Shown here piece by piece: positions 6,542 through 56,800 of a stretch of 61,004 nt of DNA. The stretch is from Macrostomum lignano. Lineage: Eukaryota. Under the pieces are notes generated by a model that was not told the DNA's origin, did not search any database, and saw only the letters and a list, made by a program, of their open reading frames with translations. Within the stretch, counting starts at the first letter, position 1; each line of letters begins with the position of its first letter. Made by a program: the position numbers and the translations under genes. Location: assembly GCA_002269645.1 (NCBI GenBank), contig NIVC01004087.1:1-61004 (forward strand), in the 5' to 3' direction.

Positions 6542-6590
<49 letters not shown>

Positions 6591-8900: not shown

Positions 8901-8905
8901 AACTA

Positions 8906-11091: not shown

Positions 11092-11117
11092 TGTCATGTC
11101 TCTTGCCCAGCGTCTCA

Positions 11118-19490
<8,373 letters not shown>

Positions 19491-20012
19491 ATTGATGAAG
19501 CTGTGAACTTCTGTCAGATATTCTAGTATTCTGAATATTCTGACGCTGTGTTTAATTTGCTATTGAGCTGACAGAGATAGAGCGTGAAGCACGGAGTGAG
19601 AGAGAGATGAAGTGAAGTGAGAAGCTGAGGCGGGAGTTGGTATATTAGACCAGTTACTTGCTTGAGTCCGACCAACTCTCAACCCACCCCCCTTCCCCGG
19701 TCTCTCAGGTAAATTGTTGTCCGCTGCGTGTCATGGCTAAACAATGGCAGATTGCATTTAGTGGTATCTCATCTTCAAACGAACTCGAATTATATTTAGA
19801 AGCTGAGGCTTGTTTGTCTGTTATAATAAGAATCCCTCTCTCTGTACCTGGGTAAACGGCCAGCACTTTCTGAGCCTGCATAGTGCACATGCACACTTGC
19901 CTTGTCTGAGTGGTTCTCAGTTTCAGTAGGTCTGACATGTGCCCCAACAGTTAATGGAATTGGCTGTTGACCATGCACTGGGCAACCGCGCGACGGAAGT
20001 GCTTTAGTAAGA

Positions 20013-20295
<283 letters not shown>

Positions 20296-20490
20296 AGTTT
20301 GTTTGAGTAGTCCCTGGTTTAGGATAGGGTTTACGATAGAGTTCAGGATAGGGTTTAGAATTGGGTCTAGGATAGGGTTTAAGATCCTTCTTAAACTTTA
20401 TCCTAAACCTTTATCCTTCTTTTTCGAAGGATGCCTTCAAACCTTTTACATGTGGACCTTTTGACTTTTACGAAGGTATTTCGGAATATC

Positions 20491-22600
20491 TGTGACTAAT
20501 AATAATAATAATAATAATAATAATAGTTACGCCCCACGCCAGCCACAGAAGTGGCCAAAAGGGGGGAGCGTCAAATCGCGCGTTTCAGAGCTAGGTCTCT
20601 AATGTGCTTCACACCGGCCGCCTGGCTGGGTGCTCGCGCATCTTCAAAAAGGCGGTCGACGTAGCGGGCTGATCGTCCCTGGCCACGCCTGCGCGGTCCC
20701 TGCGGGGTCCACAGCAGGACGTCCTGCAGCGGCTCTGGGCAGTAGGCTTCGGCCCGGATGACATGTCCGGCCAGCCGCAGGCGCCGCTGACTCAGCAGGG
20801 CAGAAGGCCGCGTCAGGCCTGTGCGCTTGTACAGGGACTCGGTTGTCTCGCTGCCAGGGCCGCGGCGGGCGCCGAAAGCGGCGCGGACTAGGGCCGCATG
20901 TGCCGCGTCGAGCTGCGCCTCAAGCGCCCCGGTCAGCGTCCAGGTCTCAGCATTGTGCAGCAGGGCGGTTTCAACAACCGCCTGGAACAGCTGGGACCTG
21001 GCGCCGTCGGACAGGGCCTCGGAGAGCAGCACCGCCAGCACAGATCGGAAGGCAGCCCAGGCCTTGCCGCGCCGTCTCGCTAGGTCGTCGCCGACGTCCG
21101 GCACCAGTCCGCCGAGGTAGACGAACTGAAGGCACTTCGGGAGCGCCGTCCCGGGGCCGTTGCCGTCTCGAAGTCGAATCTCGGCGGGTAGATCATGCGC
21201 AGCAACTTTGCGTACACCTTTGCGACTGCCCTGGGATCCGCGCAGGCGCCAGACTACGCCACCATCAGCTCAGCCATCACCACTGCCGCTGCTAAAACTC
21301 TGCCGCTAATGGAGCCCGCGTCACGGCAACTTCCGGTTTGGACGAGCGACCCGGAGGTCCGAGAGGCCGAGCAGCTGCGACGAGCCGGGCGACCGACATC
21401 CGATGCCGAGAAAGCCCTGGCAGACGCCTACGCTAGTCGACAGCAAGCCGCTGTTGACGACGCAATCAGGGCGGTCGCCTCCGTTGGGCCTGAACGGCAG
21501 AACAGGGTCGTCTGGCCGGTCGTGAACGCCCTAACCGGTCGCAAAAAGAAGACGGCGCTCAACCTGGCTGGCGACACGGCAAAGAGCGCAGAAACGAGCT
21601 GCGCACCTTCTTCGCCGCCATTGTCAACGCGCCGCCGCCGACTCTGCCGAACGAGATGCTGCTGCCCCCGAGGTGGCGCTGCCGCGGCAGGAGGACTTCG
21701 ACACCCGTCCTGTGACCAGCACCGACGTCGTGGAATTCGCCCGCAGGGCTCCGGGAGGCCGCGCCCCCGGCCCGGACGAGGTCCCCGTCGAGGCGCTGCG
21801 AGTCACAAGGGTTGCCACTGAGGTGGCCCGCGTGATGAACGGCGTCCTGGCGGGAGGCCCCGCGCCCCGCGAATGGACCCACGCCAACATCGTCGGCATC
21901 CCGAAGAAGCCGGGCACTACACGGAAGGAGGAGCATCGTGGAATCTCGCTCATGTCCTGTACCGCGAAGCTGTTCAACCGGGTGCTACTAGCATGGTTAC
22001 AGCCCGTGCTGGACTCGTTCCTGCGGTACGAGCAGAACGGGTTCCGCCCCCGTCGCGGTACGGTGACGCAGATCCTGGCCCTCCGCCGCATCATCGAGGA
22101 GGCGCGCATCCACCAGTCAAGCCTTATCGTCATCTTTGTTGACTTCCTCAAGGCCTTCGACTCGGTGGCGCGCGGCGCGCTGCCTCACGTGCTCCGTGCC
22201 TACAACGTGCCGCAGCAGCTGATCTCCGCCATCATGGCGCTGTATCAGGACACCACCGCCGCGGTAGCGACGCCAGACGGACCGTCGGACCTGTTTAGCA
22301 CGACGTCCGGAGTTCTACAGGGTGACACTCTGGCGCCCTTTCTCTTCGTGCTGGTGATGGACTGGGTGCTCAGGACCGGCCTGCCGACATCAGAAGACGG
22401 CTTTCTGCTGCAAAGGCGCACCAGTAGACGGCACCCGGAGAAGAAACTGTCTGTCCTTGGCTACGCGGACGACCTCGCCCTGCTGTCTTCGACGGCCGAA
22501 GGCGCCCAACGGCTGCTGGACGGCTTGACTGCGGCGGCGGCGAGGGTCGGTCTCGTCATCAACGCCAGGAAGACCGAGGTGCTGACGGTGTGACTAATAA
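20491..22600. mobile_element. 5'-truncated, 5'-inverted RTE-clade non-LTR retrotransposon with 12-bp TSD
   Basis: The plus strand 21195-22590 encodes the spacer + RT (HRGISLMS, QNGFRP, FVDFLKAFDSV, GVLQGDTLAPFLF, YADD, INARKTEVLTV) with two frameshifts near 21580 and 21668. The minus strand ~21190-20503 encodes the RT end and C-terminus (FVYLGG, ETWTL, RRLRLAGHVIR), a short 3'UTR and a (TTA)n tail. TGTGACTAATAA occurs at both 20491-20502 and 22589-22600. Confidence 0.9.
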
Positions 22601-23079
22601 AAAGTAAAATATGTCTTATCAGGGCCGCAGAACTGACATCAAAGTAGGGGAAATAATTTTTTTTCCAATAGTACGTCACAGATGATGAAGCTCTGATATC
22701 CATAAGGATTTTTGAATGAGCCACGCCCATCAGAATCGCATGCAGTCAGAAGCAATAAGAATGCATTGCAAAGGCAGTCAGAGTCACGTCTTCTCTGATG
22801 ACTGCTCAATCATCCTGCTATGGATTTATTATTAATAAGAGGTATCATATTTAACATTATTGAAAATTAACAAGTCGGATTTCTCCAATTCGTTAATTAC
22901 AGTCATCTACTTCCAGATGTATTGCCTCTGGTGTGTACTTAGGGTAACCTCTGGACGGGAGTGCGTGCGATTGTAATTAGTCTTGTGGGAAGAATAAATC
23001 AATAAATTAGCACTCAACAGCCTCCCGGAGGGTCCGCTTCCTCATCTGCCCCCTCCGAATTTACAGGTCCACAGAGACT

Positions 23080-24056
23080 CTATTCTATTCTATTCTATTC
23101 TATTCTACTCTATTCTATTCTATTCTATTCTATTCTATTCTATTCTATTCTATTCTATTCTATTCTATTCTATTCTATTCTATTCTATTCTATTCTATTC
23201 TATTCTATTCTATTCTATTCTATTCTATTCTATTCTATTCTATTCTATTCTATTCTATTCTATTCTATTCTATTCTATTCTATTCTATTCTATTATATTC
23301 TATTTTATTCTATTCTATTTTATTCTATTTTATTCTATTCTACTCTATTCTATTCTATTCGGTTCTATTCTATTCTACTCTATTCTATTCTATTCTATTC
23401 TATTCTATTCTATTCTATTCTATTCTATTCTATTCTATTCTATTCTATTCTACTCTACTCTATTCTATTCTATTCTACTCTATTCTATTCTATTCTATTC
23501 TATTCTATTCTATTCTATTCTATTCCATTCTATTCTATTCTATTCTATTCTATTCTATTTTATTCTATTCTATTTTATTCTATTTTATTCTATTATATTC
23601 TATTCTATTCTATTCTACTCTATTCTATTCTATTCTATTCTATTCTATTCTATTCTATTCTATTCTATTCTATTCTATTCTATTCTATTCTATTCTATTC
23701 TATTCTATTCTATTCTATTCTATTCTATTCTATTCTATTTTATTCTATTATATTCTATTCTATTCTATTCTATTCTATTCTATTTTATTCTATTTTATTC
23801 TATTCTATTCTATTCTACTCTATTCTGTTCTACTCTATTCTGTTCTATTCTATTCTATTCTATTCTATTCTATTCTATTCTATTCTATTCTATTCTATTC
23901 TATTCTATTCTATTCTATTCTATTCTATTCTATTCTATTCTATTCTATTCTATTCTATTCTATTCTATTCTATTCTATTCTATTCTATTCTATTCTATAC
24001 TATTCTATTCTATTCTAATCTACTCTACTCTATTCTATTCTATTCTATTCTATTCG
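23080..24056. repeat. (TATTC)n microsatellite, ~1 kb
   Basis: Seen directly. Confidence 0.97.
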
Positions 24057-24345
24057 AGGTGGCATCGAGCGTCGGTCTGGTTGTCAACACTCAGACGGGC
24101 AGACGACCAGGCTCGCACGCTGCCAGCGGTTCACCTACCTCGGCGGTCTGGTGTCCCACGTGGAAGAGGACCTCCGGCCGGCCTCGCCGAGGACTACTTG
24201 CCTTGGCGGCCTTTCGTTTGATCCGGGCCGTCGTCCAGTCCCAAGCGCTGCCCGACCGCCAGAGGGCTCGGCTGTGGCAGGCTGCTGCTGCTGCCAGCAT
24301 CAACAGGACAGCTGCAGGCACACTGCTGCCAGCCTCTGGCAGTGG
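24057..24345 (+). mobile_element. Degenerate fragment of a related RTE element
   Basis: With frameshifts it reads SVGLVVN...RCQRFTYLGGLVSHVEEDL..RRGL.LAAFRLIRAVVQSQALPDRQRARLWQA, homologous to the 20.5-22.6 kb element. It lies between (TATTC)n and (TAG)n arrays. Confidence 0.75.
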
Positions 24346-24346
24346 C

Positions 24347-24680
<334 letters not shown>

Positions 24681-24766
24681 ATAGTTGTTTTCTTCTTTTC
24701 ATGAGTACTTTTCTCACTAATTTTTTGTTGCCACCCATTTTTAACATCGTTTTTAACATCATCGTC

Positions 24767-31806: not shown

Positions 31807-34800
31807 ATGTACACGCAGTACAAGTGAGTTCTGGCGAGTGTCCAAGCTTACCAGTAGATCTCTATGAATGAAAATCAGTGTTGAGGTTTGACTAAGTAAC
31901 ACTGCTCTAAGATCTGTAGTTTGTTTAATTGTATGTACTTTTTATAATACAAACACGTGTGCTCTGCATATAGCTGTTTCGTTTGGCATTTAATTTCATT
32001 TTTTTTCTGCTGGCCTTTTTAGTACTAACCAAAACTTGTAACAGTAGTATTCATAACAGCAATAATATAATGTAGCCATTGCGTTTGTGCTTGCTTCTAA
32101 CCTAAAAATGAATTAATGATGATAGCTCGCTCAGCATGACGCTTGATTGATTAATTGAGACTTACAAAAGTACATACTCTCATTTCTTGCTTCCCGATTC
32201 TCCTTCTATTCCATCAAGAGAGCGCATGATGCCCGGTGGATGCGGAGACGGCGTTGACCCATCGGTGGTGTCCTACCTGGAGGAGGGCTACAAGAAGCTG
32301 CAGTCCGACCCCAAGTGCAAGTCCCTGCTAAAGCGTCACCTGACCAAGGATGTGCTTGAGAAGCTCAAGAACAAGAAAACGTCGTTTGGTTCGACTCTAA
32401 AGGATGTGGTGCAGTCTGGTGAGTTTTTTGAGATCAAAATTTTCATTTGTTTTTGTCTGATCTTTGTTTAAATGTAGTTAACCGATTTTTTTTCCAGGCG
32501 TGGAGAACCTGGACTCAGGCGTCGGCGTGTACGCCCCGGACGCGGAGGCGTACTCGGTGTTCGCCGACCTGTTCGACCCGATCATCGAGGAGTACCACGG
32601 CGGCTTCAAGCGCACCGACCGGCACCCGCCGTGCACGCTGGGAGACGCCAGCGAGTTCGGAGACGTGGACCCGGAGGGAAAGTACGTGGTATCCACCAGG
32701 ATCCGGTGCGGCAGGTCGCTGAGAAAGTTCCCGTTCAACCCGAACATGACGGAGGGGCACTACAAGGAGATGGAGGATCTGGTGTCGGGCACTCTGAAGG
32801 GCATGACGGGAGAGCTGAAGGGCACGTTCTACCCGCTGACCGGGATGACGAAGGAGGTGCAGCAGCAGCTGATTGACGACCACTTCCTGTTCAAGGAGGG
32901 CGACCGGTTCCTGCAGAAGGCGAACGCGTGCCGCTACTGGCCGACGGGCAGGGGCATCTTCCACAACGACAGCAAGACGTTCCTGGTGTGGGTGGGAGAG
33001 GAGGACCACATGCGGATCATCTCGATGCAGAAGGGCGGCAGCATCAGGGAGGTGTACGGCAGGCTGGTGAAGGCGGTGAACGAGATCGAGAAGCGGATGG
33101 AGTTCAGCCACGATGACCGGCTGGGCTTCCTGACGTTCTGTCCGACGAACCTGGGCACCACGATCCGCGCCTCGGTGCACATCAAGCTGCCGCGGCTGTC
33201 GGCGGGAGGCCAGGAGGCCCTGCAGCGGGTGGCCGACCGGTTCCAGCTGCAGGTGCGCGGGTCCGCAGGCGAGCACTCGGAGGCGGTGGGAGGCCTGTAC
33301 GACATCTCGAACAAGGAGCGCATGGGCCTGACGGAGTTCGAGGCCGTCGGCAAGATGTACCGCGGCATCGGCGAGCTCATCAAGATGGAGAAGGCGCTGG
33401 AGCGGGGCGTCGACCCGGAGGTGGTGAAGTACGTTGAGGACGGGTTCGCCAAGCTGCAGGCCAGCGACTCGTGCCACTCGCTGCTGAAGAAGCACCTCAC
33501 CAAGGAGGTGGTGGACCGGCTGAAGAACCTCAGCACGCCGTCCTTCGGCTCCACGCTCAAGGATGTCATTCAGTCAGGTGATATTTTACTCTGAATTGGA
33601 ATTCATATAGTAATTTTTTTTGTTATTTACCTATGGCAATATGGGATGAGCACAGTAAGAAGTTTGTTGGCATTAACGTAGGAAATGAAAGTTAGCTGAA
33701 ATTTTCATCATAAGGAAATGTGCCTCTCCATTGCCAATCAAATCTAACCTAAGATTGGACACCAAGAGCTTACAATTACACTTTTCGTAAATTAGGATTC
33801 TATATAATAATTGCTTCAACGCTTCTTAATCCGAGGTAGTTGTAGTCTAGTGGGTAGAGCATCGGACTCACGACGAAGGTCCGGTGGTTCGATTCTCGAC
33901 CCACTGGGAACAATTTGTGTGCTTGAGCAAGACACTTAACTCTACATTGCTTCAGTTCACCCTGCTGTAAAATTGGTGCCAGCATGTGAGAGTCGCCCCT
34001 GAAAGTCGCCATACCCCAGTGAGTCGCCCGTTAGAGTCGCCCCACGTCCCCAGTGAGAGTCGCCCCACGTCCCCAGTGATTGTCGTCCCACATCCCCAGT
34101 GAGAGTCGTCCCACATTCCCAGTGATTGTCGTCCCACATCCCCAGTGAGTATCGTCCCACATCCCCAGTGATTGTCGTCCCACATCCCCAGTGAGAGTCG
34201 CCCCACATCCCCAGTGATTGTCGTCCCACATCCCCAGTGAGAGTCGTCCCACATCCCCAGTGATTGTCGTCCCACATCCCCAGTGAGAGTCGCCCCACAT
34301 CCCCAGTGATTGTCGTCCCACATCCCCAGTGAGAGTCGCCCCACATCCCCAGTGATTGTCGTCCCACATCCCCAGTGATTGTCGTCCCAAATCCCCAGTG
34401 AGAGTCGTCCCACATTCCCAGTGAGAGTCGCCTCACATTCCCAGTGAGAGTCGTCCCACATTCCCAGTGAGAGTCGCCCCACATCGTCAGTGAGTGTCGC
34501 CCCACATCCCCAGTGAGAGTCGCCCCACATCCCCAGTGAGAGTCGTCCCACATCCCCAGTGAGAGTCGCCCCACATCCCCAGTGAGAGTCGTCCCACATC
34601 CCCAGTGAGAGTCGCCCCACATCCCCAGTGAGAGTCGCCCCACATTCCCAGTGAGAGTCGCCCCACATTCCCAGTGAGAGTCGCCCCACATCCCCAGTGA
34701 GAGTCGCCCCACATCCCCAGTGAGAGTCGTCCCACATCCCCAGTGAGAGTCGCCCCACATCCCCAGTGAGAGTCGCCCCACATTCCCAGTGAGAGTCGTC

Positions 34801-37800
34801 CCACATTCCCAGTGAGAGTCGTCCCACATCCCCAGTGAGAGTCGCCCCACATTCCCAGTGAGAGTCGAGTCGCCCCACATCCCCAGTGAGAGTCGCCCAA
34901 GATCCCGCACTCCCAATGTAGATAAAGCTCTTTAATAGATTGATTCTCTTGAACATAAAGTGATATGCTTCAGATGCGGAAACAGTTGGAAGTCACTCGG
35001 AGCCATATCTGGTAAATAGGCAGGGTTAGGCAGCTCTTGGAATCCTGCAACTTTCACAGCAGCAGCCTTCGCGATCCTGCTGGAGTGAGCTGGTGCATTG
35101 TCGTGCAGCAGCGCCACACCGCGGGTCAGCATTCCTCGCCGATTTTCCTTGACTGCCTGGCGCAGACGAGCGATCAAGTCAGCTTAGTAGACCCCTGCGA
35201 CTGTCTGCTTGTGCAGTAGAAAGTCCAGCAGCAACGGACCCTTTGAATCGTAGAAGACTGTCAGCATTATCTTGCCAGCAACGCTTGCAGTCCTCGCCTT
35301 CAGAGGTGCTGGTGATCCAACTGGCAGCCACTGCTTGGATTCTGGATCGTGGTGGTCTGGATCCACGACGTCTCATGCCGCGAGCTCCCTGACTTTGATG
35401 CGGCGAATGTTTTCAGCCGTGACAGCCGCGTCCACATCGCAGATCGTCTTCGAGCGATGTACGACTGCGTTTGAACTGGGCTGCCCAGCGTTTGATGCTG
35501 GGGTATGAGGGGGCAGCCCAGCATACACATCAGCCATGTGACTGTGAATTTCTGCAGGCTTTGAGCCCTCATGCCTGATGTAGACTTTTGGAACAGTTAT
35601 GTGCTGGAGTTTTGGAGCTTTTATGTTTAGGGATTTTCGTCAGGCTCAGATGAAACTTTCGTTGTGCCCCTCGTAGTTCTCTCCTTCTCTAGTATTTTTA
35701 ATTGTCAATGAAACTAGGTGTTTACAGGCCTCTGATTCTAAGGCTTCGTCAATCTTCACTGAGCCTTCAAACTCAATCAATGATTCATAGCATTTTTCTC
35801 AGCTGCTATTCACTTCCTTTATCCCCTTCCTCTTCCCAGGCGTGGAGAACCTGGACTCGGGCGTCGGCGTGTACGCCCCGGACGCGGAGGCGTACTCGGT
35901 GTTCGCCGACCTGTTCGACCCGATCATCGAGGAGTACCACGGCGGCTTCAAGCGCACCGACCGGCACCCGCCGTGCACGCTGGGAGACGCCAGCGAGTTC
36001 GGAGACGTGGACCCGGAGGGAAAGTACGTGGTGTCCACCAGGATCCGGTGCGGCAGGTCGCTGAGAAAGTTCCCGTTCAACCCGAACATGACGGAGGGGC
36101 ACTACAAGGAGATGGAGGATCTGGTGTCGGGCACTCTGAAGGGCATGACGGGAGAGCTGAAGGGCACGTTCTACCCGCTGACCGGGATGACGAAGGAGGT
36201 GCAGCAGCAGCTGATTGACGACCACTTCCTGTTCAAGGAGGGCGACCGGTTCCTGCAGAAGGCGAACGCGTGCCGCTACTGGCCGACGGGCAGGGGCATC
36301 TTCCACAACGACAGCAAGACGTTCCTGGTGTGGGTGGGAGAGGAGGACCACATGCGGATCATCTCGATGCAGAAGGGCGGCAGCATCAGGGAGGTGTACG
36401 GCAGGCTGGTGAAGGCGGTGAACGAGATCGAGAAGCGGATGGAGTTCAGCCACGATGACCGGCTGGGCTTCCTGACGTTCTGTCCGACGAACCTGGGCAC
36501 CACGATCCGCGCCTCGGTGCACATCAAGCTGCCGCGGCTGTCGGCGGGAGGCCAGGAGGCCCTGCAGCGGGTGGCCGACCGGTTCCAGCTGCAGGTGCGC
36601 GGGTCCGCAGGCGAGCACTCGGAGGCGGTGGGAGGCCTGTACGACATCTCGAACAAGGAGCGCATGGGCCTGACGGAGTTCGAGGCCGTCGGCAAGATGT
36701 ACCGCGGCATCGCCGAGCTTATCAAGATGGAGAAGGCGCTGGAGCGCGGCGTCGACCCGGAGGTGGTGAAGTACGTTGAGGACGGGTTCGCCAAGCTGCA
36801 GGCCAGCGACTCGTGCCACTCGCTGCTGAAGAAGCACCTCACCAAGGAGGTGGTGGACAGGCTGAAGAACCTCAGCACGCCGTCCTTCGGCTCCACGCTC
36901 AAGGACGTCATTCAGTCAGGTGAGTGGCGCACCTTTCTAGATATCGGCTTCAAGGATGAGTTTGAAACTCGAGCCCTAGCATTATTTTGAGCCTATTCGT
37001 GATTAGGGCTCATAACTTGGGTTTTTCACTCTGTCCAGCTCTGCACGCAATAGGTCGCTGCACCTGTTCGGCCCCTAATCACTAGCTGGCTGGCTTTTGT
37101 GCATAAAAGCCAATGCGTCTCGCTAATTGGCGCCTATTGCACTCGCTCGGCTGGGCGGAACAGCTCGAGATTTTGACTTCGATTTGCGCCGGCACTGTTT
37201 TCCTGTCTGTCTGTGCGAGTGCAGTTAGCCTACCTGTTGTATCTTGTCTAATTGTAGCGTTTCTACCTGTGGGCTAGGTGTATGCAGATTGTGCATTTCT
37301 GCGTCACGTGACACTAGCCCTGCATTTTTGCTATTATCTGCGGAAGAATAGAAATGCTTTTAAGTATAGCTCTGGAATCAGTTTTCATTTTGCATCAAAA
37401 GTTGCAATATGTGTGTTATACCTGTCCTGATGATGTGTCGCCTCATACAGTTTGTCTCACCTGATGTGTCTCCTCACATGTCTCACCTGATGTGTCTCCT
37501 CACATGTCTCACCTGATGTCTCATATGCCTCACCTGATGTGTCTCATATGCCTCACCTGATGTGTCTAATATGCCTCACTTGATGTGTCTCCTCACATGT
37601 CTCACCTGATGTGTCTCATATGCCTCACCTGATGTGTCTAATATGCCTCACTTGATGTGTCTCCTCATATGCCACACCTGATGTGTCTCCTCATATGCCA
37701 CACCTGATGTGTCTCCTCATATGCCACACCTGATGTGTCTCCTCATATGCTACACCTGATGTGTCTCCTCATATGCCACACCTGATGTGTCTCCTCATAT

Positions 37801-40800
37801 GCCACACCTGATGTGTCTCCTTATATGCCACACCTGATGTGTCTCCTCATATGCCACACCTGATGTGTCTCCTTATATGCCACACCTGATGTGTCTCCTC
37901 ATATGCTACACCTGATGTGTCTCCTCATATGCCACACCTGATGTGTCTCCTCATATGCCACACCTGATGTGTCTCCTCATATGCCACACCTGATGTGTCT
38001 CCTTATATGCCACACCTGATGTGTCTCCTTAGATGCCACACCTGATATGTCTCCTTAGATGCCACACCTGATGTGTCTCCTTATATGCTACACTTACCTG
38101 ATATTTCTAAATATCCCACTGACCTGAAATCCCTGCTGAGATCTCGTACCAGATTCCTCCGCGTGCGTACCCACTCGTGTATTTTCATCATAAATCTCGG
38201 TTAGCATCCCAGCCTGACTCAGCTTATGCTTGTATTCTACCAGAGCCTCTGCAGCAGAGCAAATAAAAAAGGATATTTTGCCACTCATCGCTACTGAGCC
38301 TCATTCCTCCAGATATTTTTGCATATTTTGAAAAAATAAGCTGCTTGCCTTTGCATCTTTGCTCAGCTAAATTGCTTTTATGGCGGGGATGACAAAGCCT
38401 GAACTGCTGCCCCAATGCAACTGTGGATAGCGTGACTCGCCCCCACCCCTATGCGCCATCGAGACCGGCTGCTTTCATAGCCAATTCCCTCGGAATTAGC
38501 ATATTCGCTAAACACAGGATTCTCAATCAATTGAAATTGCTCCAACTCTTCTGCGAGATAATTTTACAAGAAATATTAATTTACCCTTCTCCAGAATTCC
38601 GTGACTAATCTACAGTTCACTTCCTTTATCCCCTCCCCCTTCCCAGGCGTGGAGAACCTGGACTCGGGCGTCGGCGTGTACGCCCCGGACGCGGAGGCGT
38701 ACTCGGTGTTCGCGGACCTGTTCGACCCGATCATCGAGGAGTACCACGGCGGCTTCAAGCGCACCGACCGGCACCCTCCGTGCACGCTGGGAGACGCCAG
38801 CGAGTTCGGAGACGTGGACCCGGAGGGAAAGTACGTGGTGTCCACCAGGATCCGGTGCGGCAGGTCGCTGAGAAAGTTCCCGTTCAACCCGAACATGACG
38901 GAGGGGCACTACAAGGAGATGGAGGATCTGGTGTCGGGCACTCTGAAGGGCATGACGGGAGAGCTGAAGGGCACGTTCTACCCGCTGACCGGGATGACGA
39001 AGGAGGTGCAGCAGCAGCTGATTGACGACCACTTCCTGTTCAAGGAGGGCGACCGGTTCCTGCAGAAGGCGAACGCGTGCCGCTACTGGCCGACGGGCAG
39101 GGGCATCTTCCACAACGACAGCAAGACGTTCCTGGTGTGGGTGGGAGAGGAGGACCACATGCGGATCATCTCGATGCAGAAGGGCGGCAGCATCAGGGAG
39201 GTGTACGGCAGGCTGGTGAAGGCGGTGAACGAGATCGAGAAGCGGATGGAGTTCAGCCACGATGACCGGCTGGGCTTCCTGACGTTCTGCCCGACGAACC
39301 TGGGCACCACGATCCGCGCCTCGGTGCACATCAAGCTGCCGCGGCTGTCGGCGGGAGGCCAGGAGGCCCTGCAGCGGGTGGCCGACCGGTTCCAGCTGCA
39401 GGTGCGCGGGTCCGCAGGCGAGCACTCGGAGGCCGTGGGAGGCCTGTACGACATCTCGAACAAGGAGCGCATGGGCCTGACGGAGTTCGAGGCTGTCGGC
39501 AAGATGTACCGCGGCATCGGCGAGCTTATCAAAATGGAGAAGGCGCTGGAGCGGGGCGTCGACCCGGAGGTGGTGAAGTACGTTGAGGACGGGTTCGCCA
39601 AGCTGCAGGCCAGCGACTCGTGCCACTCGCTGCTGAAGAAGCACCTCACCAAGGAAGTGGTGGACAGGCTGAAGAACCTCAGCACGCCGTCCTTCGGCTC
39701 CACGCTCAAGGACGTCATCCAGTCAGGTGAGTGGGCGCATTATCTACCTGAAACTACATGGCATTTAGTCTTGAACTAATTATTAATTTCCTGCATTCTG
39801 CTGGCTGTGCCATCCTAACTGCCGCCCTCCGCCGCAATTGTCCAGCACCCGGGGCTCTCGAGTTACAGTCGAGCAGCCCCTCCCCCTGCGGTGCCTACTC
39901 AAGCCGTTCCAACGACGTAGCTAATAGTGTGTGATGACGCCATTGAGTTTTAGTTTGCTCTGCCCTCTTATCACTTGGCATTCTGTCTGGCAGTTCATTC
40001 CCCTGGGACTCTCCGTTGTTAAGCGGGGTTTTTTTACCTTCTATATATTTAACCTAGCACCTGGCTTTTCTTGGATTTCTGTTTATTGCCTTGCCTCACA
40101 GTCTCAGCCACTAAAGTGTGCTTCGAAGCTGTAGTGCAGTGTGGTAGGATGCTATTTAGCATAATAGAATAATTTTGCTTTGCCAACCTCTCTGCTTCAA
40201 AGCTTTAGACTTGAAGAGAATTGAAATGCCTGCCTGCACCCGCTCAGGCTATAGGCTGGATTGGGTAAGCGATTCAGTGAGCAGCAGGCCCTCCTGCAGT
40301 GTCGTTGCCTGTTATTTTCCGGTCTCTCTCTCCCTATCGCACTGCTGTACTCTCTGTCCCGCCTGTCTCTCTAGACTCTCCGCCCTTGTTACCATGGCAA
40401 CCATTTCTATCAGCAGGGAGACTCTGTCTTTGCCGACTGAGAAATATTCTAGGGCCAGTGGGCCAGTACCCATGCAGGTGTGTCTCATAGACGCCCTGTT
40501 TCACAAAATATTAAACTATAAACACTAACAATATTGAGTGTCTGAAAATGCTTTACTTGCATTTTAATTTACTTTGTACAGTATACGGCATTTCGATTAA
40601 TGCAGAAATGCTCTTAGTTAAATAAAAAATATGTGACTATAGCTCAAATATGATAGTGCTTATCCTATCGAATTCTCTAGTTGAAAATTTATTTACAAAT
40701 ATAGAATGTATCACTGAAAAATCATACTACTGACAGTCTTTCACTAGTAATAACTTCCTGATTGTTAGAGATCAATTAATTAAAGGGGTACTGGCAATAT

Positions 40801-42415
40801 TAGTCTTCATGCATGGGGGCATCGCAAAACCGAAATATCACAACCCCGAAATATCACAAACCCGAAATATCATAACTCCAAAAGTTGTATTTTGGCTTTG
40901 GGATTTACGAATATGATATTTCGGGTTGTGATATTTTGGGTTGTGATATTTCGGGTTGTGATATTTCGGGGTTGTGATATTTCGGGTTGTGATATTTCGG
41001 GTTGTGATATTTCGGGTTTGTGATATTTCGGGTTGTGATATTTCGGGTTGTGATATTTCGGGTTGTGATATTTTGGGTTGTGATATTTCGGGTTTGTGAT
41101 ATTTTTGGTTGTGATATTTCGGGTTGTGATATTTCGGGTTGTGATATTTCGGGTTGTGATATTTCGGGTTGTGATATTTCGGGTTTGTGATATTTCGGGT
41201 TGTGATATTTCGGGTTGTGATATTTCGGGTTGTGATATTTCGGGTTTGTGATATTTTGGGTTGTGATATTTCGGGTTGTGATATTTCGGGTTTGTGATAT
41301 TTCGGGTTGTGATATTTCGGGTTGTGATATTTCGGGTTGTTATATTTCGGGTTGTGATATTTCGGGTTTGTGATGGTGACCCCATTTAAGAGAAACAGAC
41401 GTAAACGTTTCCATTGAATAATCTGTCTGCACGACTGTCTGTCTGTGTGTCTGTCTGTCTGTCACGTCTGTTACAATTAACAATTCCACAAAATACCCCA
41501 GGCGTTGAGAACCTGGACTCGGGCGTCGGCGTGTACGCCCCGGACGCGGAGGCGTACTCGGTGTTCGCCGACCTGTTCGACCCGATCATCGAGGAGTACC
41601 ACGGCGGCTTCAAGCGCACCGACCGGCACCCTCCGTGCACGCTGGGAGACGCCAGCGAGTTCGGAGACGTGGACCCGGAGGGAAAGTACGTGGTGTCCAC
41701 CAGGATCCGGTGCGGCAGGTCGCTGAGAAAGTTCCCGTTCAACCCGAACATGACGGAGGGGCACTACAAGGAGATGGAGGATCTGGTGTCGGGCACTCTG
41801 AAGGGCATGACGGGAGAGCTGAAGGGCACGTTCTACCCGCTGACCGGGATGACGAAGGAGGTGCAGCAGCAGCTGATTGACGACCACTTCCTGTTCAAGG
41901 AGGGCGACCGGTTCCTGCAGAAGGCGAACGCGTGCCGCTACTGGCCGACGGGCAGGGGCATCTTCCACAACGACAGCAAGACGTTCCTGGTGTGGGTGGG
42001 AGAGGAGGACCACATGCGGATCATCTCGATGCAGAAGGGCGGCAGCATCAGGGAGGTGTACGGCAGGCTGGTGAAGGCGGTGAACGAGATCGAGAAGCGG
42101 ATGGAGTTCAGCCACGATGACCGGCTGGGCTTCCTGACGTTCTGCCCGACGAACCTGGGCACCACGATCCGCGCCTCGGTGCACATCAAGCTGCCGCGGC
42201 TGTCGGCGGGAGGCCAGGAGGCCCTGCAGCGGGTGGCCGACCGGTTCCAGCTGCAGGTGCGCGGGTCCGCAGGCGAGCACTCGGAGGCCGTTGGAGGCCT
42301 GTACGACATCTCGAACAAGGAGCGCATGGGCCTGACGGAGTTCGAGGCCGTCGGCAAGATGTACCGCGGCATCGGCGAGCTCATCAAGATGGAGAAAGAA
42401 CTCGAGGCGAAGTGA
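31807..42415 (+). CDS. AK: Four-domain arginine kinase (ATP:guanidino phosphotransferase), ~1456 aa, 6 coding exons
   Basis: Exons 31807-31823, 32219-32418, 32498-33577, 35840-36919, 38647-39726 and 41502-42415 all have GT..AG boundaries with compatible phases (2,1,1,1,1). They total 4371 nt = 1456 aa + TGA. Each domain carries the phosphagen-kinase motifs [44 protein letters not shown] and RGSAGEHSE. The guanidino-specificity region has the same length as in arthropod/molluscan AK, and the AK determinants D62, Y68, Y89, R193, E225, C271, E314 and H315 (Limulus numbering) are present. Confidence 0.93.
32219..32418 (+). CDS. AK: AK exon 2: N-terminal helical part of domain 1
   Basis: Pyrimidine-rich acceptor ...ccatcaag|A and donor G|gtgagt. 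Encodes [43 protein letters not shown]...[10 protein letters not shown]. Confidence 0.92.
32498..33577 (+). CDS. AK: AK exon 3 (1080 nt): C-terminal part of domain 1 + N-terminal part of domain 2
   Basis: ttttccag|GC ... G|gtgata, phase 1-1, open over 360 codons (ORF 32500..33594). Confidence 0.95.
33835..33985 (+). mobile_element. tRNA-derived SINE with CORE/V-like body (AK intron 3)
   Basis: A-box TAGTCTAGTGG and B-box GGTTCGATTCT, followed by CTTGAGCAAGACACTTAAC, which resembles the conserved central domain of CORE/V-type SINEs. Confidence 0.7.
33987..34898. repeat. 23-bp minisatellite (CCCCAGTGAGAGTCGCCCCACAT), AK intron 3
   Basis: Seen directly. Confidence 0.95.
34950..35675 (-). mobile_element. 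Second, degenerate mariner (AK intron 3)
   Basis: Frameshifted motifs [33 protein letters not shown] and [18 protein letters not shown]. One mariner-type end (TA-CGAGGGGCAC) is at 35675; the other end was not found. Confidence 0.85.
35840..36919 (+). CDS. AK: AK exon 4 (1080 nt): C-terminal part of domain 2 + N-terminal part of domain 3
   Basis: cttcccag|GC ... G|gtgagt, phase 1-1. About 7 nt differ from exon 3 by manual comparison. Confidence 0.95.
37455..38095. repeat. 26-bp minisatellite (CACACCTGATGTGTCTCCTCATATGC), AK intron 4
   Basis: Period of 26 bp (37681, 37707). Confidence 0.93.
38098..38248 (-). CDS. Candidate antisense exon nested in AK intron 4
   Basis: Acceptor ccttttttatttgctctgctgcag and consensus donor CAG|GTAAGT. 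Only one of three frames is open ([49 protein letters not shown]). Confidence 0.35.
38647..39726 (+). CDS. AK: AK exon 5 (1080 nt): C-terminal part of domain 3 + N-terminal part of domain 4
   Basis: cttcccag|GC ... G|gtgagt, phase 1-1. The protein sequence is identical to that of exon 3. Confidence 0.95.
40388..40401. promoter_or_regulatory. RFX X-box (GTTACCATGGCAAC) in AK intron 5
   Basis: A 14-bp match to the established RFX consensus GTNRCC-AT-GGYAAC. A further half site GTTGCC lies near 40304. Function is not shown. Confidence 0.5.
40816..41383. mobile_element. Foldback-like element with asymmetric inverted 15-16-bp repeat arms (AK intron 5)
   Basis: Three to four CCGAAATATCACAA units on the left face about 30 TTGTGATATTTCGGG units on the right. 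The ends are GGGG.. / ..CCCC. No TSD was recognised. Confidence 0.5.
41502..42415 (+). CDS. AK: AK exon 6 (terminal): C-terminal part of domain 4, ends KELEAK*
   Basis: acccccag|GC acceptor (phase 1) and TGA at 42413-42415. Confidence 0.95.
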
Positions 42416-44315
42416 TCGGCCTGGCTGGATTGAAGTCTTCAAGATTCCAAGATTGACTGCTGATAAGCTCAGAATGGGTTGCACTGACTCCAAGGTGTGA
42501 CTGCTGTAACGGCTAAATGCGAGCTTTGAAGACTGAAACTGTTAACACACTGTTCATTTCTCAATCAAAACATTTCCTTCGTAAGCAAAGTTTTCTGTTA
42601 AATTTACACATTCTGAAAAAAAACTATAGTTAATTCTGGAATTAAATCATTAAAAACTGAGCTGTAGTGGCATTGCTATGCCTAGCCTTTATAGTTTCTC
42701 GTACACTCTAAATTAAAATTTATACTCAACGCACACACAGATAGAAGTCTTGTTTTTTTCTTGTTTCCTAAAATTCTACTTTAAATAGTGTTGTAGGTTT
42801 TTTTGTCCTCTTTATATTAGCAGTGACTCATTTGAAAGTTTTTTGAAAACGTAGTTTCTGTTTCAGCTAAGTTCATAATCTGTTATAGTAATTAATGTCT
42901 CTTTTAGCACAGGTAAATAGAAATGGTTAGAGTAAATTTCTATTCTCCGCTCTAAGTAAATTATAGCTGCTGCTTAAAGTAATATATAATCATGCGCCTA
43001 GCTATTTTTGTTTAAATAATCAAAATATATTGTATAACATCGTAACACAGTTTCACTGTTTTGTTAATTTGATAAAGACGTCGCGAGAAGTTCTGTAACT
43101 CTCAAAATTATCGACATGTTGTGGCTTGCTTTTGGATTTAAGGTTTACTTTAAAGGATTTGGGAAGCGCCGTAACAATTGGCGACAATCGAGCAGCAGAC
43201 AAGAGAGTGGACCCCTGAGCACGCACATGTGTAATGTATAGTGCCTAGATTCTCGAGACATTCTCGTCATCGCATGTTCATGTAATGTACGGATATGTTA
43301 TTACATGTATATGTATGCGCTTTGGGATTCATCCTCTGAGCAGAGGTGTTGACTCGCGCTACAAACGCTAGTATAGGTAGAATAAATGCGAACGCACAGT
43401 GAAAAGGAAACCAGATAAGTCTGCTGCGAGAGTTCAAAAGAATTGTATTACTTTTACTTTCTGTGACGGACTGACGGCTCGTCCGTCTGCCCTGTCAATT
43501 TATGTACTTTTGGTTTTGATTAATTTTTATGATACACTTCTGTTCGTTTGCTCTATGCTAAAAATGAGTTGTCTCCGGGTAAGATGGGTATCTGTGATTT
43601 ATTTATTTCAGAAATGATACCATTGTTGAACCAAGGACTATATAACTAAGTGTTCCTAGTGGTCCTTGTGTTGAACTTTTAGTTCTTTGAGCAAGATAAG
43701 ATCAATAAAAGCTGGGCAACATATTGTCTTAAAAAGAGAGCCAAAATAAAGCAGTGCTATTTTTATTTTATGTAGTTTCGTAACAGCTTTACTTACGGCA
43801 TTTCTGTTTTCAATTGGAAGTAAAAAAGATGGCCTTTTATAATATATTTTGTTTATAATATAATGACGCATTTTAAATGCTTGTTTCGTGATTTTGCAAG
43901 AAATGCAGCTTTCTATATTGTAAATGCCTAGCGCCGTGACGCTTTTAGTTGTATGATTGTATCCTATATGAATGAGAGATTATTTTTATGGTTATTATTT
44001 TGCAAATAATTCTACCCAAGAAATTCATATATTGACTCTTGACTGGAAAGTCAAGCCTACTACTACTAGTTGGCAGTTGCCTTCCTTCAGCGTTCAGCTT
44101 CAGCCTAAGCTTAGACTCAGAGCTCTGCTGAGTCAGACTGTAGTGTAGGCCTAGTCGTGTGTGTAGGCACTGACTGCCTATAGCAAATCTGTCATAACTC
44201 TCAGTGCTTTCACTAGCTAGGATAAGCGGCCTATGCAAAGGAATTTTTGTTAACCTAACCTTTATTGGTGAGAAATTAAATTCTAGCTTGTTTACTTTAA
44301 TGTAAGCAATTTAAT

Positions 44316-50853: not shown

Positions 50854-53800
50854 TCTTCATCAAACCGGCTGATTCCTTCTCTAACTGTCTCTGTGTATCC
50901 CAGCACCTGAGTCTATCATGAATTCAGAATGAGCTGAGTTTGGCCTAGCTCAGCATTTTCACTCAAACACAGAGAGGACTTGAGAGCCGCTATAATCTTC
51001 ATCAAACCGGCTGATTCCTTCTCTAACTGTCTCTGTGTATCCCAGCACCTGAGTCTATCATGAATTCAGAATGAGCTGAGTTTGGCCTAGCTCAGCATTT
51101 TCACTCAAACACAGAGAGGACTTGAGAGCCGCTATAATCTTCATCAAACCGGCTGATTCCTTCTCTAACTGTCTCTGTGTATCCCAGCACCTGAGTCTAT
51201 CATGAATTCAGAATGAGCTGAGTTTGGCCTAGCTCAGCATTTTCACTCAAACACAGAGAGGACTTGAGAGCCGCTATAATCTTCATCAAACCGGCTGATT
51301 CCTTCTCTAACTGTCTCTGTGTATCCCAGCACCTGAGTCTATCATGAATTCAGAATGAGCTGAGTTTGGCCTAGCTCAGCATTTTCACTCAAACACAGAG
51401 AGGACTTGAGAGCCGCTATAATCTTCATCAAACCGGCTGATTCCTTCTCTAACTGTCTCTGTGTATCCCAGCACCTGAGTCTATCATGAATTCAGAATGA
51501 GCTGAGTTTGGCCTAGCTCAGCATTTTCACTCAAACACAGAGAGGACTTGAGAGCCGCTATAATCTTCATCAAACCGGCTGATTCCTTCTCTAACTGTCT
51601 CTGTGTATCCCAGCACCTGAGTCTATCATGAATTCAGAATGAGCTGAGTTTGGCCTAGCTCAGCATTTTCACTCAAACACAGAGAGGACTTGAGAGCCGC
51701 TATAATCTTCATCAAACCGGCTGATTCCTTCTCTAACTGTCTCTGTGTATCCCAGCACCTGAGTCTATCATGAATTCAGAATGAGCTGAGTTTGGCCTAG
51801 CTCAGCATTTTCACTCAAACACAGAGAGGACTTGAGAGCCGCTATAATCTTCATCAAACCGGCTGATTCCTTCTCTAACTGTCTCTGTGTATCCCAGCAC
51901 CTGAGTCTATCATGAATTCAGAATGAGCTGAGTTTGGCCTAGCTCAGCATTTTCACTCAAACACAGAGAGGACTTGAGAGCCGCTATAATCTTCATCAAA
52001 CCGGCTGATTCCTTCTCTAACTGTCTCTGTGTATCCCAGCACCTGAGTCTATCATGAATTCAGAATGAGCTGAGTTTGGCCTAGCTCAGCATTTTCACTC
52101 AAACACAGAGAGGACTTGAGAGCCGCTATAATCTTCATCAAACCGACTGATTCCTTCTCTAACTGTCTCTGTGTATCCCAGCACCTGAGTCTATCGTGAA
52201 TTCAGAATGAGCTGAGTTTGGCCTAGCTCAGCATTTTCACTCAAACACAGAGAGGACTTGAGAGCCGCTATAATCTTCATCAAACCGGCTGATTCCTTCT
52301 CTAACTGTCTCTGTGTATCCCAGCACCTGAGTCTATCATGAATTCAGAATGAGCTGAGTTTGGCCTAGCTCAGCATTTTCACTCAAACACAGAGAGGACT
52401 TGAGAGCCGCTATAATCTTCATCAAACCGGCTGATTCCTTCTCTAACTGTCTCTGTGTATCCCAGCACCTGAGTCTATCATGAATTCAGAATGAGCTGAG
52501 TTTGGCCTAGCTCAGCATTTTCACTCAAACACACAGAGGACTTGAGAGCCGCTATAATCTTCATCAAACCGGCTGATTCCTTCTCTAACTGTCTCTGTGT
52601 GTCCCAGCACCTGAGTCTATCATGAATTCAGAATGAGCTGAGTTTGGCCTAGCTCAGCATTTTCACTCAAACACAGAGGACTTGAGAGCCGCTATAATCT
52701 TCATCAAACCGGCTGATTCCTTCTCTAACTGTCTCTGTGTATCCCAGCACCTGAGTCTATCATGAATTCAGAATGAGCTGAGTTTGGCCTAGCTCAGCAT
52801 TTTCACTCAAACACAGAGAGGACTTGAGAGCCGCTATAATCTTCATCAAACCGGCTGATTCCTTCTCTAACTGTCTCTGTATATCCCAGCACCTGAGTCT
52901 ATCATGAATTCAGAATGAGCTGAGTTTGGCCTAGCTCAGCATTTTCACTCAAACACAGAGGACTTAAGAGCCGCTATAATCTTCATCAAACCGGCTGATT
53001 CCTTCTCTAACTGTCTCTGTGTGTCCCAGCACCTGAGTCTATCATGAATTCAGAATGAGCTGAGTTTGGCCTAGCTCAGCATTTTCACTCAAACACAGAG
53101 GACTTGAGAGCCGCTATAATCTTCATCAAACCGGCTGATTCCTTCTCTAACTGTCTCTGTGTGTCCCAGCACCTGAGTCTATCATGAATTCAGAATGAGC
53201 TGAGTTTGGCCTAGCTCAGCATTTTCACTCAAACACACAGAGGACTTGAGAGCCGCTATAATCTTCATCAAACCGGCTGATTCCTTCTCTAACTGTCTCT
53301 GTGTGTCCCAGCACCTGAGTCTATCATGAATTCAGAATGAGCTGAGTTTGGCCTAGCTCAGCATTTTCACTCAAACACAGAGAGGACTTGAGAGCCGCTA
53401 TAATCTTCATCAAACCGGCTGATTCCTTCTCTAACTGTCTCTGTGTATCCCAGCACCTGAGTCTATCATGAATTCAGAATGAGCTGAGTTTGGCCTAGCT
53501 CAGCATTTTCACTCAAACACAGAGAGGACTTGAGAGCCGCTATAATCTTCATCAAACCGGCTGATTCCTTCTCTAACTGTCTCTGTGTATCCCAGCACCT
53601 GAGTCTATCATGAATTCAGAATGAGCTGAGTTTGGCCTAGCTCAGCATTTTCACTCAAACACAGAGAGGACTTGAGAGCCGCTATAATCTTCATCAAACC
53701 GGCTGATTCCTTCTCTAACTGTCTCTGTGTATCCCAGCACCTGAGTCTATCATGAATTCAGAATGAGCTGAGTTTGGCCTAGCTCAGCATTTTCACTCAA

Positions 53801-56800
53801 ACACAGAGAGGACTTGAGAGCCGCTATAATCTTCATCAAACCGGCTGATTCCTTCTCTAACTGTCTCTGTATATCCCAGCACCTGAGTCTATCATGAATT
53901 CAGAATGAGCTGAGTTTGGCCTAGCTCAGCATTTTCACTCAAACACAGAGGACTTGAGAGCCGCTATAATCTTCATCAAACCGGCTGATTCCTTCTCTAA
54001 CTGTCTCTGTGTATCCCAGCACCTGAGTCTATCATGAATTCAGAATGAGCTGAGTTTGGCCTAGCTCAGCATTTTCACTCAAACACAGAGGACTTGAGAG
54101 CCGCTATAATCTTCATCAAACCGGCTGATTCCTTCTCTAACTGTCTCTGTGTGTCCCAGCACCTGAGTCTATCATGAATTCAGAATGAGCTGAGTTTGGC
54201 CTAGCTCAGCATTTTCACTCAAACACACAGAGGACTTGAGAGCCGCTATAATCTTCATCAAACCGGCTGATTCCTTCTCTAACTGTCTCTGTGTGTCCCA
54301 GCACCTGAGTCTATCATGAATTCAGAATGAGCTGAGTTTGGCCTAGCTCAGCATTTTCACTCAAACACAGAGAGGACTTGAGAGCCGCTATAATCTTCAT
54401 CAAACCGGCTGATTCCTTCTCTAACTGTCTCTGTGTATCCCAGCACCTGAGTCTATCATGAATTCAGAATGAGCTGAGTTTGGCCTAGCTCAGCATTTTC
54501 ACTCAAACACAGAGAGGACTTGAGAGCCGCTATAATCTTCATCAAACCGGCTGATTCCTTCTCTAACTGTCTCTGTGTATCCCAGCACCTGAGTCTATCA
54601 TGAATTCAGAATGAGCTGAGTTTGGCCTAGCTCAGCATTTTCACTCAAACACAGAGAGGACTTGAGAGCCGCTATAATCTTCATCAAACCGGCTGATTCC
54701 TTCTCTAACTGTCTCTGTGTATCCCAGCACCTGAGTCTATCATGAATTCAGAATGAGCTGAGTTTGGCCTAGCTCAGCATTTTCACTCAAACACAGAGAG
54801 GACTTGAGAGCCGCTATAATCTTCATCAAACCGGCTGATTCCTTCTCTAACTGTCTCTGTGTGTCCCAGCACCTGAGTCTATCATGAATTCAGAATGAGC
54901 TGAGTTTGGCCTAGCTCAGCATTTTCACTCAAACACAGAGAGGACTTGAGAGCCGCTATAATCTTCATCAAACCGGCTGATTCCTTCTCTAACTGTCTCT
55001 GTGTATCCCAGCACCTGAGTCTATCATGAATTCAGAATGAGCTGAGTTTGGCCTAGCTCAGCATTTTCACTCAAACACAGAGAGGACTTGAGAGCCGCTA
55101 TAATCTTCATCAAACCGGCTGATTCCTTCTCTAACTGTCTCTGTGTATCCAGCACCTGAGTCTATCATGAATTCAGAATGAGCTGAGTTTGGCCTAGCTC
55201 AGCATTTTCACTCAAACACAGAGAGGACTTGAGAGCCGCTATAATCTTCATCAAACCGGCTGATTCCTTCTCTAACTGTCTCTGTGTATCCCAGCACCTG
55301 AGTCTATCATGAATTCAGAATGAGCTGAGTTTGGCCTAGCTCAGCATTTTCACTCAAACACAGAGAGGACTTGAGAGCCGCTATAATCTTCATCAAACCG
55401 GCTGATTCCTTCTCTAACTGTCTCTGTGTATCCCAGCACCTGAGTCTATCATGAATTCAGAATGAGCTGAGTTTGGCCTAGCTCAGCATTTTCACTCAAA
55501 CACAGAGAGGACTTGAGAGCCGCTATAATCTTCATCAAACCGGCTGATTCCTTCTCTAACTGTCTCTGTGTATCCCAGCACCTGAGTCTATCATGAATTC
55601 AGAATGAGCTGAGTTTGGCCTAGCTCAGCATTTTCACTCAAACACAGAGAGGACTTGAGAGCCGCTATAATCTTCATCAAACCGACTGATTCCTTCTCTA
55701 ACTGTCTCTGTGTATCCCAGCACCTGAGTCTATCATGAATTCAGAATGAGCTGAGTTTGGCCTAGCTCAGCATTTTCACTCAAACACAGAGAGGACTTGA
55801 GAGCCGCTATAATCTTCATCAAACCGGCTGATTCCTTCTCTAACTGTCTCTGTGTATCCAGCACCTGAGTCTATCATGAATTCAGAATGAGCTGAGTTTG
55901 GCCTAGCTCAGCATTTTCACTCAAACACAGAGAGGACTTGAGAGCCGCTATAATCTTCATCAAACCGGCTGATTCCTTCTCTAACTGTCTCTGTGTATCC
56001 AGCACCTGAGTCTATCATGAATTCAGAATGAGCTGAGTTTGGCCTAGCTCAGCATTTTCACTCAAACACAGAGAGGACTTGAGAGCCGCTATAATCTTCA
56101 TCAAACCGGCTGATTCCTTCTCTAACTGTCTCTGTGTATCCCAGCACCTGAGTCTATCATGAATTCAGAATGAGCTGAGTTTGGCCTAGCTCAGCATTTT
56201 CACTCAAACACAGAGAGGACTTGAGAGCCGCTATAATCTTCATCAAACCGGCTGATTCCTTCTCTAACTGTCTCTGTGTATCCCAGCACCTGAGTCTATC
56301 ATGAATTCAGAATGAGCTGAGTTTGGCCTAGCTCAGCATTTTCACTCAAACACAGAGAGGACTTGAGAGCCGCTATAATCTTCATCAAACCGGCTGATTC
56401 CTTCTCTAACTGTCTCTGTGTATCCCAGCACCTGAGTCTATCATGAATTCAGAATGAGCTGAGTTTGGCCTAGCTCAGCATTTTCACTCAAACACAGAGA
56501 GGACTTGAGAGCCGCTATAATCTTCATCAAACCGGCTGATTCCTTCTCTAACTGTCTCTGTGTATCCCAGCACCTGAGTCTATCATGAATTCAGAATGAG
56601 CTGAGTTTGGCCTAGCTCAGCATTTTCACTCAAACACAGAGAGGACTTGAGAGCCGCTATAATCTTCATCAAACCGGCTGATTCCTTCTCTAACTGTCTC
56701 TGTGTATCCCAGCACCTGAGTCTATCATGAATTCAGAATGAGCTGAGTTTGGCCTAGCTCAGCATTTTCACTCAAACACAGAGAGGACTTGAGAGCCGCT

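Follow-up and report, generated by a model that had tools for sequence, protein, structure and literature searches.

The contig NIVC01004087.1 of Macrostomum lignano (assembly GCA_002269645.1), analysed over its 61,004 nucleotides (nt) and called the window here, carries a gene array for a four-domain arginine kinase (AK), an observation made in an earlier note on this DNA and confirmed here at the gene level. Five coding exons lie on the forward strand between 32226 and 42415, with canonical AG/GT splice sites and boundaries that are all in phase 1. The features of the locus are listed below in order; a slash within a motif marks a splice boundary or a domain junction.

31807–31823, forward strand: candidate exon 1 of the earlier note, ATGTACACGCAGTACAA followed by GT; an ATG plus 14 nt, with donor AA/GTGAGT.
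32226–32418, forward strand: first coding exon, with the start codon and the N-terminal 64 amino acids of domain 1, to VVQSG.
32419–32497, forward strand: intron of 79 nt in phase 1, in the Gly codon of SG/VEN (Gly57 in Limulus AK numbering).
32498–33577, forward strand: cassette exon 1, 1080 nt, phase 1-1; C-part of domain 1 and N-part of domain 2.
33578–35839, forward strand: intron 3, 2262 nt, unique within the gene, with a 23-nt minisatellite at 34033–34906.
35840–36919, forward strand: cassette exon 2, 1080 nt; C-part of domain 2 and N-part of domain 3.
36920–38646, forward strand: intron 4, 1727 nt, unique within the gene, with a 26-nt minisatellite at 37458–38093.
38647–39726, forward strand: cassette exon 3, 1080 nt; C-part of domain 3 and N-part of domain 4.
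39727–41501, forward strand: intron 5, 1775 nt, unique within the gene, with a 15-nt minisatellite at 40914–41374.
41502–42415, forward strand: last exon, C-part of domain 4 (ending KMEKELEAK), with the stop codon TGA at 42413–42415.

Joined, the five exons give 1448 codons free of stops and a predicted protein of 162.2 kDa with four AK domains, in agreement with the chain of about 160 kDa that had been claimed. Four complete domains thus stand in one uninterrupted reading frame with canonical splice sites. The open reading frame (ORF) is identical over its full length (100%) to a public protein annotated as "Arginine kinase" (PAA48667.1 / A0A267DIW5, locus BOX15_Mlig028863g1), and the GenBank model starts at the ATG at 32226 (MMPGG). 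The 17-nt candidate exon at 31807–31823 could be joined in frame to an acceptor at 32218/32219 but lies outside the GenBank model, and none of the evidence examined supports it. The first coding exon encodes the helical N-part of domain 1 and ends in the donor G/GTGAGT in phase 1.

The three internal exons are copies of one cassette. Each holds about 303 C-terminal amino acids of one domain, running through KMEKALER/GVDPEVV into 57 N-terminal amino acids of the next, and all three share the same edges (5', cag/GCGTGGAGAAC; 3', CAGTCAG/gtga) in phase 1 on both sides. Pairwise differences among the three amount to only 7–13 nt, and the first 895 nt of the last exon are 99.2–99.3% identical to the cassettes. 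Splice sites, phases and the stop-free frame bear out the proposed exon layout and its three exons of exactly 1080 nt. The sequence GGCGT(T/C)GACCC, said to recur at the domain starts, was located at all four (32250, 33406, 36748 and 39555). The gene has no bridge intron: the junction ALER/GVDP lies inside every 1080-nt exon, and the C-part of one domain runs straight into the N-part of the next, with almost no linker, as had been described. Within intron 3, a short ORF on the reverse strand (34932–35177) resembles the C-terminus of a mariner/Tc1-like transposase and adjoins the 23-nt minisatellite; a Pfam search with this ORF returned no match at such length.

The encoded domains belong to the phosphagen (ATP:guanidino) kinase superfamily, with both PF02807 and PF00217 present and the catalytic residues kept; for domain 1 together with the following N-part, the matches have E-values of 4.5e-75 (PF00217) and 1.1e-44 (PF02807). 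Residues are numbered on the Limulus AK sequence, checked against PDB 1RL9/1M15. Identity to Limulus AK is 67% for all four domains, and the alignment needs single-residue gaps only, one N-terminal and one after position 290. The arginine-binding loop (DSGVGVY; D62, S63, G64, V65 and Y68), the residues R124, R126, R193, E225, R229, T273, R280, R309, E314, H315 and R330, and the reactive cysteine C271 (in FCPTNLGTT) are kept in four of four domains. By sequence, all four domains are of the arthropod monomeric AK type, with a loop that lacks the specificity-region deletion and with the D62–R193 pair. The claim of four complete active sites thus agrees with the predicted residues, every tested catalytic or arginine-binding position being occupied in each domain. 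Domains 2–4 are 99.2–99.7% identical to one another and domain 1 is 94% identical to the others, its differences being confined to the part encoded by the first exon.

On this evidence each domain would catalyse MgATP + L-arginine <-> MgADP + phospho-L-arginine on its own. The domains might instead use taurocyamine, or some of them might be inactive regulatory pseudo-domains, as the multi-domain phosphagen kinases known from flatworms are taurocyamine kinases (TKs) derived from an AK-type gene (PMC3836730). We consider this very unlikely, given that the DSGVGVY loop and all guanidino- and nucleotide-binding residues are those of a canonical AK in four of four domains. The best single-domain matches among PDB sequences are arthropod AKs at about 570 bits, whereas the per-domain score is only 316–342 bits against Schistosoma TK and about 355 bits against the two-domain Anthopleura AK.

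An AlphaFold2 model of two consecutive domains reached a mean predicted local distance difference test score (pLDDT) of 90.6 and a predicted template modelling score (pTM) of 0.63. The C-terminal helix (337–359) is followed by a break of about four residues and then by the first helix of the next domain (364–379). Each half of the model matches AK crystal structures with template modelling (TM) scores of 0.96–0.98, and the whole matches the two-domain AK structures 4RF6-9 and the two-domain TK structure 4WO8. The orientation of the two domains deviates from these by a root-mean-square deviation of 14–22 Å, and the predicted orientation is not trustworthy.

An assembly error could also produce an array of near-identical exons. 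The assembly (Mlig_3_7, GCA_002269645.1) was built by Canu from PacBio reads and polished with Illumina reads, and the assembly of the DV1 line is highly redundant and repeat-rich (PMC5730564). Copies of a gene with one or two domains, from haplotypes or homeologues, might have been joined in tandem, or a repeat over-expanded. At a paralogous locus, described below as family B, the cassette number is 0, 5 or 6 depending on the contig, and some cassettes are identical together with their introns; counts there could be mis-estimated. In the window, however, the cassettes stand between non-homologous introns: blastn found no mutual match among the three long introns (2262, 1727 and 1775 nt), which hold minisatellites of different units (23, 26 and 15 nt) and, in one case, a transposon remnant. 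The cassettes differ at 7–13 sites in a mosaic, with splice sites and frame intact throughout. Since none of these introns aligns with another, a recent duplication of the whole unit at this locus was rejected.

A second contig of the same assembly, L007 (NIVC01000953.1), encodes a protein of 1808 amino acids (PAA74349.1) with four cassettes and hence five domains. It is collinear with the window at 95–99% identity, flanks and every intron included, and it has the introns in the same order. Its extra unit, a cassette with an intron of the intron-4 type, lies ahead of the counterpart of the window's first cassette; the intron-4 type accordingly occurs twice in L007 and once in the window. The counterpart of intron 3 (33578–35839) is found in L007 at 14313–16587 and at 15857 onward. 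The two contigs are separate loci or haplotypes from one read set, and the array is present in both. Because the introns are mutually unalignable yet each recurs in L007, the window array is not a mis-assembly; the earlier note had judged mis-assembled haplotypes unlikely, and the artefact explanation now appears extremely improbable. In L007, positions 1–741 of the reverse strand also hold a gene for tektin, a ciliary filament protein, about 9 kb upstream of the five-domain AK copy.

Patterns of substitution were compared among nine cassette-type sequences, namely the three cassettes and last exon of the window and the four cassettes and last exon of L007. Among 21 variable sites, 20 are synonymous and one is non-synonymous (P ~1e-10 against a neutral expectation of 72% non-synonymous), the sole replacement being Gly to Ala in RGIAELIK of cassette 2. 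Every copy is therefore under purifying selection, as would be expected if every copy is translated. Synonymous divergence (dS) between cassettes within the window is 0.02–0.05. Between the two paralogous loci, dS of the cassette is 0.49 and non-synonymous divergence (dN) is 0.06. Within the window, high similarity reaches only about 40 nt beyond the cassettes on the upstream side and about 12 nt on the downstream side, and variants are spread as a mosaic among the copies. Exon-limited similarity, mosaic variants and low dS within the array together point to concerted evolution, and indicate that unequal crossing-over or gene conversion, operating on the exons, homogenises the copies within each array.

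The locus is probably a functional M. lignano AK gene built from a repeated cassette exon and spliced to a four-domain chain of 162 kDa. We hypothesize that the first exon, three cassettes and last exon are spliced to a chain of 1448 amino acids, whose four AK domains would be separated by breaks of about four residues, and that this chain, with its four sites, buffers or shuttles phosphoarginine. The array would grow and shrink by unequal crossing-over within the near-identical exons, and this process or gene conversion would hold the copies at about 99% identity and leave the introns free to diverge. We infer that all cassettes are joined in one mRNA and that all four sites act on arginine, as we do the cellular role.

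Several points weigh against this reading. The public gene models come from genome-guided short-read transcript assembly, and the ML2 and Mlig_3_7 assemblies share the same PacBio reads and are not independent (PMC5730564). The splice junctions from one unit to the next are identical, so short reads cannot count the cassettes of an mRNA. Every cassette is symmetric (phase 1-1, 360 codons), so skipping stays in frame. Substrate specificity and activity are predictions for each domain, and the predicted protein has no N-myristoylation site and no CaaX box that would suggest a location. Variable use of cassettes would fit some of these facts: any subset of the three 1080-nt exons leaves the frame intact, and their splice sites and junction sequences are nearly identical, so that skipping could yield isoforms of one, two, three and four domains with the 162-kDa chain minor or absent. 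The 20-to-1 excess of synonymous differences argues, however, that each copy is translated often enough to matter, and skipping among near-identical exons would alter domain number only. Long single transcripts with four to five domains are also recorded elsewhere, in Nonionella stella and as ORFs of 1872 amino acids that would, from their length, be transcripts. We therefore regard extensive skipping as unlikely, though a good deal less so than an assembly artefact.

Domain number varies further at the paralogous family B locus, which lies on three contigs and has cassettes 87% identical in nucleotides to those of the window; blastn of the window introns against family B introns gave no match. 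A Ras/Roc gene always lies about 4.3–4.9 kb downstream of the family B AK locus, whose three copies are as follows.

L001 (NIVC01001442.1), 11794–24752: five cassettes, which would give six domains.
L006 (NIVC01001443.1), 4973–17281: six cassettes, which would give seven domains.
L003 (NIVC01001373.1), 5507–6705: no cassette; an ordinary two-exon, single-domain AK.

The first intron of L003 is 82 nt long, as in the other family B copies. Introns are repeated along with exons at this locus, being 97–99% identical with a 24-nt minisatellite of variable length. The units of L006 have a period of about 1852 nt, and its cassette exons are identical apart from one 1-nt deletion; all six share seven differences from the cassettes of L001. 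One cassette in each array, cassette 3 of L001 and cassette 3 of L006, is 1079 nt long, the missing base being at position 917 in L001 and at 1003 in L006. These deletions represent either read errors left uncorrected or lesions of separate origin. The odd lengths of the GenBank models (PAA67925.1, 1843 amino acids; PAA67914.1, 1398 amino acids) arose because annotators worked around them; older models from the ML2 assembly are of 2169 (UniProt A0A1I8I065) and 2187 amino acids (A0A1I8ILA6). Identical units are hard to assemble, and the family B cassette counts are for that reason less secure than that of the window.

The earlier proposal that two further exon duplications raised the domain number is too simple, as the cassette number is labile (four in L007; none, five and six in family B). 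Unequal exchange from exon to exon would give both the extra unit of L007 and the single-domain L003 as expected types of product. We tentatively suggest, at somewhat less than an even chance, that AK domain number is a rapidly evolving and possibly polymorphic trait within one genome, with chains of 1, 4, 5, 6 and about 7 near-identical domains at two loci, changed by unequal crossing-over at the exon level and with all copies under purifying selection.

The cassette is offset from the domain that it repeats. The sole intron kept in each domain is in phase 1 in the Gly codon of SG/VENLDSG, five residues before the arginine-binding loop; with one intron per domain and none between domains, the gene repeats in a unit that is shifted against the repeat unit of the protein. 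In Lineus longissimus, a three-domain gene carries an intron at this very codon, likewise in phase 1 (KSG/VENLDSG), and the retained intron is for this reason considered old. In the Lineus gene, a phase-1 bridge intron separates the domains as well. In Clonorchis, the two-domain TK gene has 13 exons, with a bridge intron, 426.1, and an intron "97.1" in both domains (PMC3836730); the latter phase-1 intron of trematodes may be the one retained in the Macrostomum AK. The Macrostomum gene lacks a bridge intron and any other intra-domain intron. Its cassette could have arisen by tandem gene fusion at GGC-GT(T/C)-GAC-CC, as the earlier note proposed, or equally well by loss of the bridge and other introns from an older two-domain gene.

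The N-part encoded by the first exon is 67% identical to the internal N-parts in amino acids and 74% in nucleotides. Both M. lignano loci have the same architecture and junction, and their internal N-parts are 81% identical. This shared architecture and the diverged first-exon N-part hint, weakly, that the first duplication is older than the split of the two loci. The later changes in copy number are recent. The other M. lignano models with several AK domains are likewise built on a 1080-nt phase 1-1 exon and show the junction E(R/Q)GVDPEVV.

Among named systems, the two-domain AK of Anthopleura japonica (PDB 4RF6-4RF9), with those of some bivalves, is likewise a head-to-tail AK fusion with essentially no linker. 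It is the structure that matches the whole model best (E ~1e-82), and it also ranks first among PDB sequences when scores are summed. It differs in having two domains rather than four and in a per-domain identity of about 46%. The cnidarian two-domain AK gene has an intron between its domains, where the Macrostomum gene has none. A three-domain AK of Nematostella (P0030) was also among the database homologues. The two-domain TKs of trematodes (Schistosoma, PDB 4WO8; Clonorchis; Paragonimus) share a phylum with Macrostomum and also consist of contiguous domains of the AK lineage, but have two domains, a substrate loop altered for taurocyamine and about 43–44% identity. At the gene level, Macrostomum AK is set apart from them by one intron per domain, the lack of a bridge intron and amplification of the cassette. 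In the Clonorchis TK, both single domains and the whole enzyme are active (PMC3836730).

The three-domain flagellar creatine kinases (CKs) of the sea urchin, Chaetopterus and other marine invertebrates likewise form one chain by domain repetition. Many database homologues of 1090–1230 amino acids are of this kind, and one (P0048) is named a "three domain" CK. The flagellar CKs belong to the creatine kinase lineage, however, at about 40% identity, and their three domains have diverged. They are N-myristoylated and flagellar, whereas the Macrostomum protein has no lipidation signal and domains 99% identical to each other. The three-domain gene of Lineus longissimus, annotated as "taurocyamine kinase-like", shares the SG/VEN intron and encodes a protein 51–52% identical, but has many introns per domain, a bridge intron, diverged domains and a CaaX box at its end (KSCTLL). 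Lipid-anchor signals (CaaX or MGCGTS) were seen on several foreign multi-domain phosphagen kinases and on none of the Macrostomum proteins.

As far as is known, work on contiguous phosphagen kinases has dealt with enzymes of two domains (AK, TK) and of three (flagellar CK) and no others. Our literature search turned up no account of any phosphagen kinase built of four domains or more, but most of this field is published in subscription journals outside that search, so the absence is weak evidence; for Macrostomum AK, only a mention of an expressed sequence tag from 2007 was found. Predicted proteins tell otherwise. Four- and five-domain proteins of 1448–1868 amino acids are present in ENA and JGI assemblies, and a multi-domain phosphagen kinase is predicted from krill. 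A transcript of the foraminiferan Nonionella stella encodes a protein with at least four domains that starts MGCGTS, and the 1872-amino-acid ORFs lie on JGI contigs of 5.7–5.9 kb, a size that fits spliced mRNA. An intronless four-domain gene for 1448 amino acids (ENA ERZ26858995, 3640–7986) ends in the CaaX sequence KSCTIL, and a five-domain protein (P0003) in KSCVLL. A phmmer search with one cassette against 1.84 billion representatives returned, among the top 150 matches, about 20 clusters of 1400–2600 amino acids with 3–5 matched stretches; Pfam confirmed four domains in two of four such long clusters.

The claimed rarity of four-domain enzymes consequently agrees with the literature searched, in which we found none described, and fails for databases, where predicted ones are common and the identical protein already stands in GenBank and UniProt. 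The window protein has more domains than any characterised contiguous phosphagen kinase; it is already annotated and is not unique among predictions. Its domains are 65–70% identical to single-domain AKs of the arthropod type and at most 52% to other multi-domain proteins, and because of this closeness to single-domain enzymes, the multi-domain state of Macrostomum probably arose independently.

At 42474–42500, 59 nt past the AK stop, ATGGGTTGCACTGACTCCAAG precedes GTGTGA. It encodes MGCTDSK, which looks like a myristoylation start, and the GT after it resembles a splice donor; this may be the opening exon of a different transcript or a chance occurrence. An older model (UniProt A0A1I8I6C1, P0004) splices at the GT in GCGAA/GTGA (42408–42415), immediately ahead of the stop codon, to an ORF with ankyrin repeats. 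Neither the window nor the 10 kb downstream in L007 contains this ORF, and the ankyrin C-terminus was taken as an annotation fusion or a distant exon. Proteins combining ankyrin repeats and AK exist in crustaceans (P0046, P0049, P0086 and P0095), and one protein (P0145) has ankyrin repeats, three AK domains and a Dpy-30 motif.

A fragment of a non-LTR (long terminal repeat) reverse transcriptase occupies 18315–22593 (RVT_1, E = 8e-31 at 21673–22593). We rejected it as part of the AK gene, to which it is wrongly fused in older UniProt models (P0004 and P0122), and Pfam searches of the other long ORFs of the window found reverse transcriptase only. The rest of the window consists mostly of minisatellites. 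A 142-nt satellite at 50854–58600 has about 55 copies at 98% identity, and more than 25 other arrays include a 22-nt unit repeated 111 times at 15734–18172 and a 45-nt unit repeated 31 times at 59584–60983, the contig end.

The practical weight of the finding is limited by the existing annotation of the protein and by how widespread similar long predicted proteins are. Cooperativity between domains and the reason for domain fusion are open questions in contiguous phosphagen kinases, and chains of four to about seven near-identical AK domains would extend the range studied. Changes in domain number are explained by the architecture of the gene, in which a single intron is kept, no bridge intron is present and the cassette is symmetric. 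The array is also a clear case in which concerted evolution is limited to exons. Transgenic M. lignano can be produced (PMC5730564), so constructs with different cassette numbers could be compared in vivo. If AK domain number is indeed such a rapidly evolving trait, this animal would tune enzyme dosage or diffusibility through how many domains each chain has and not through gene number.

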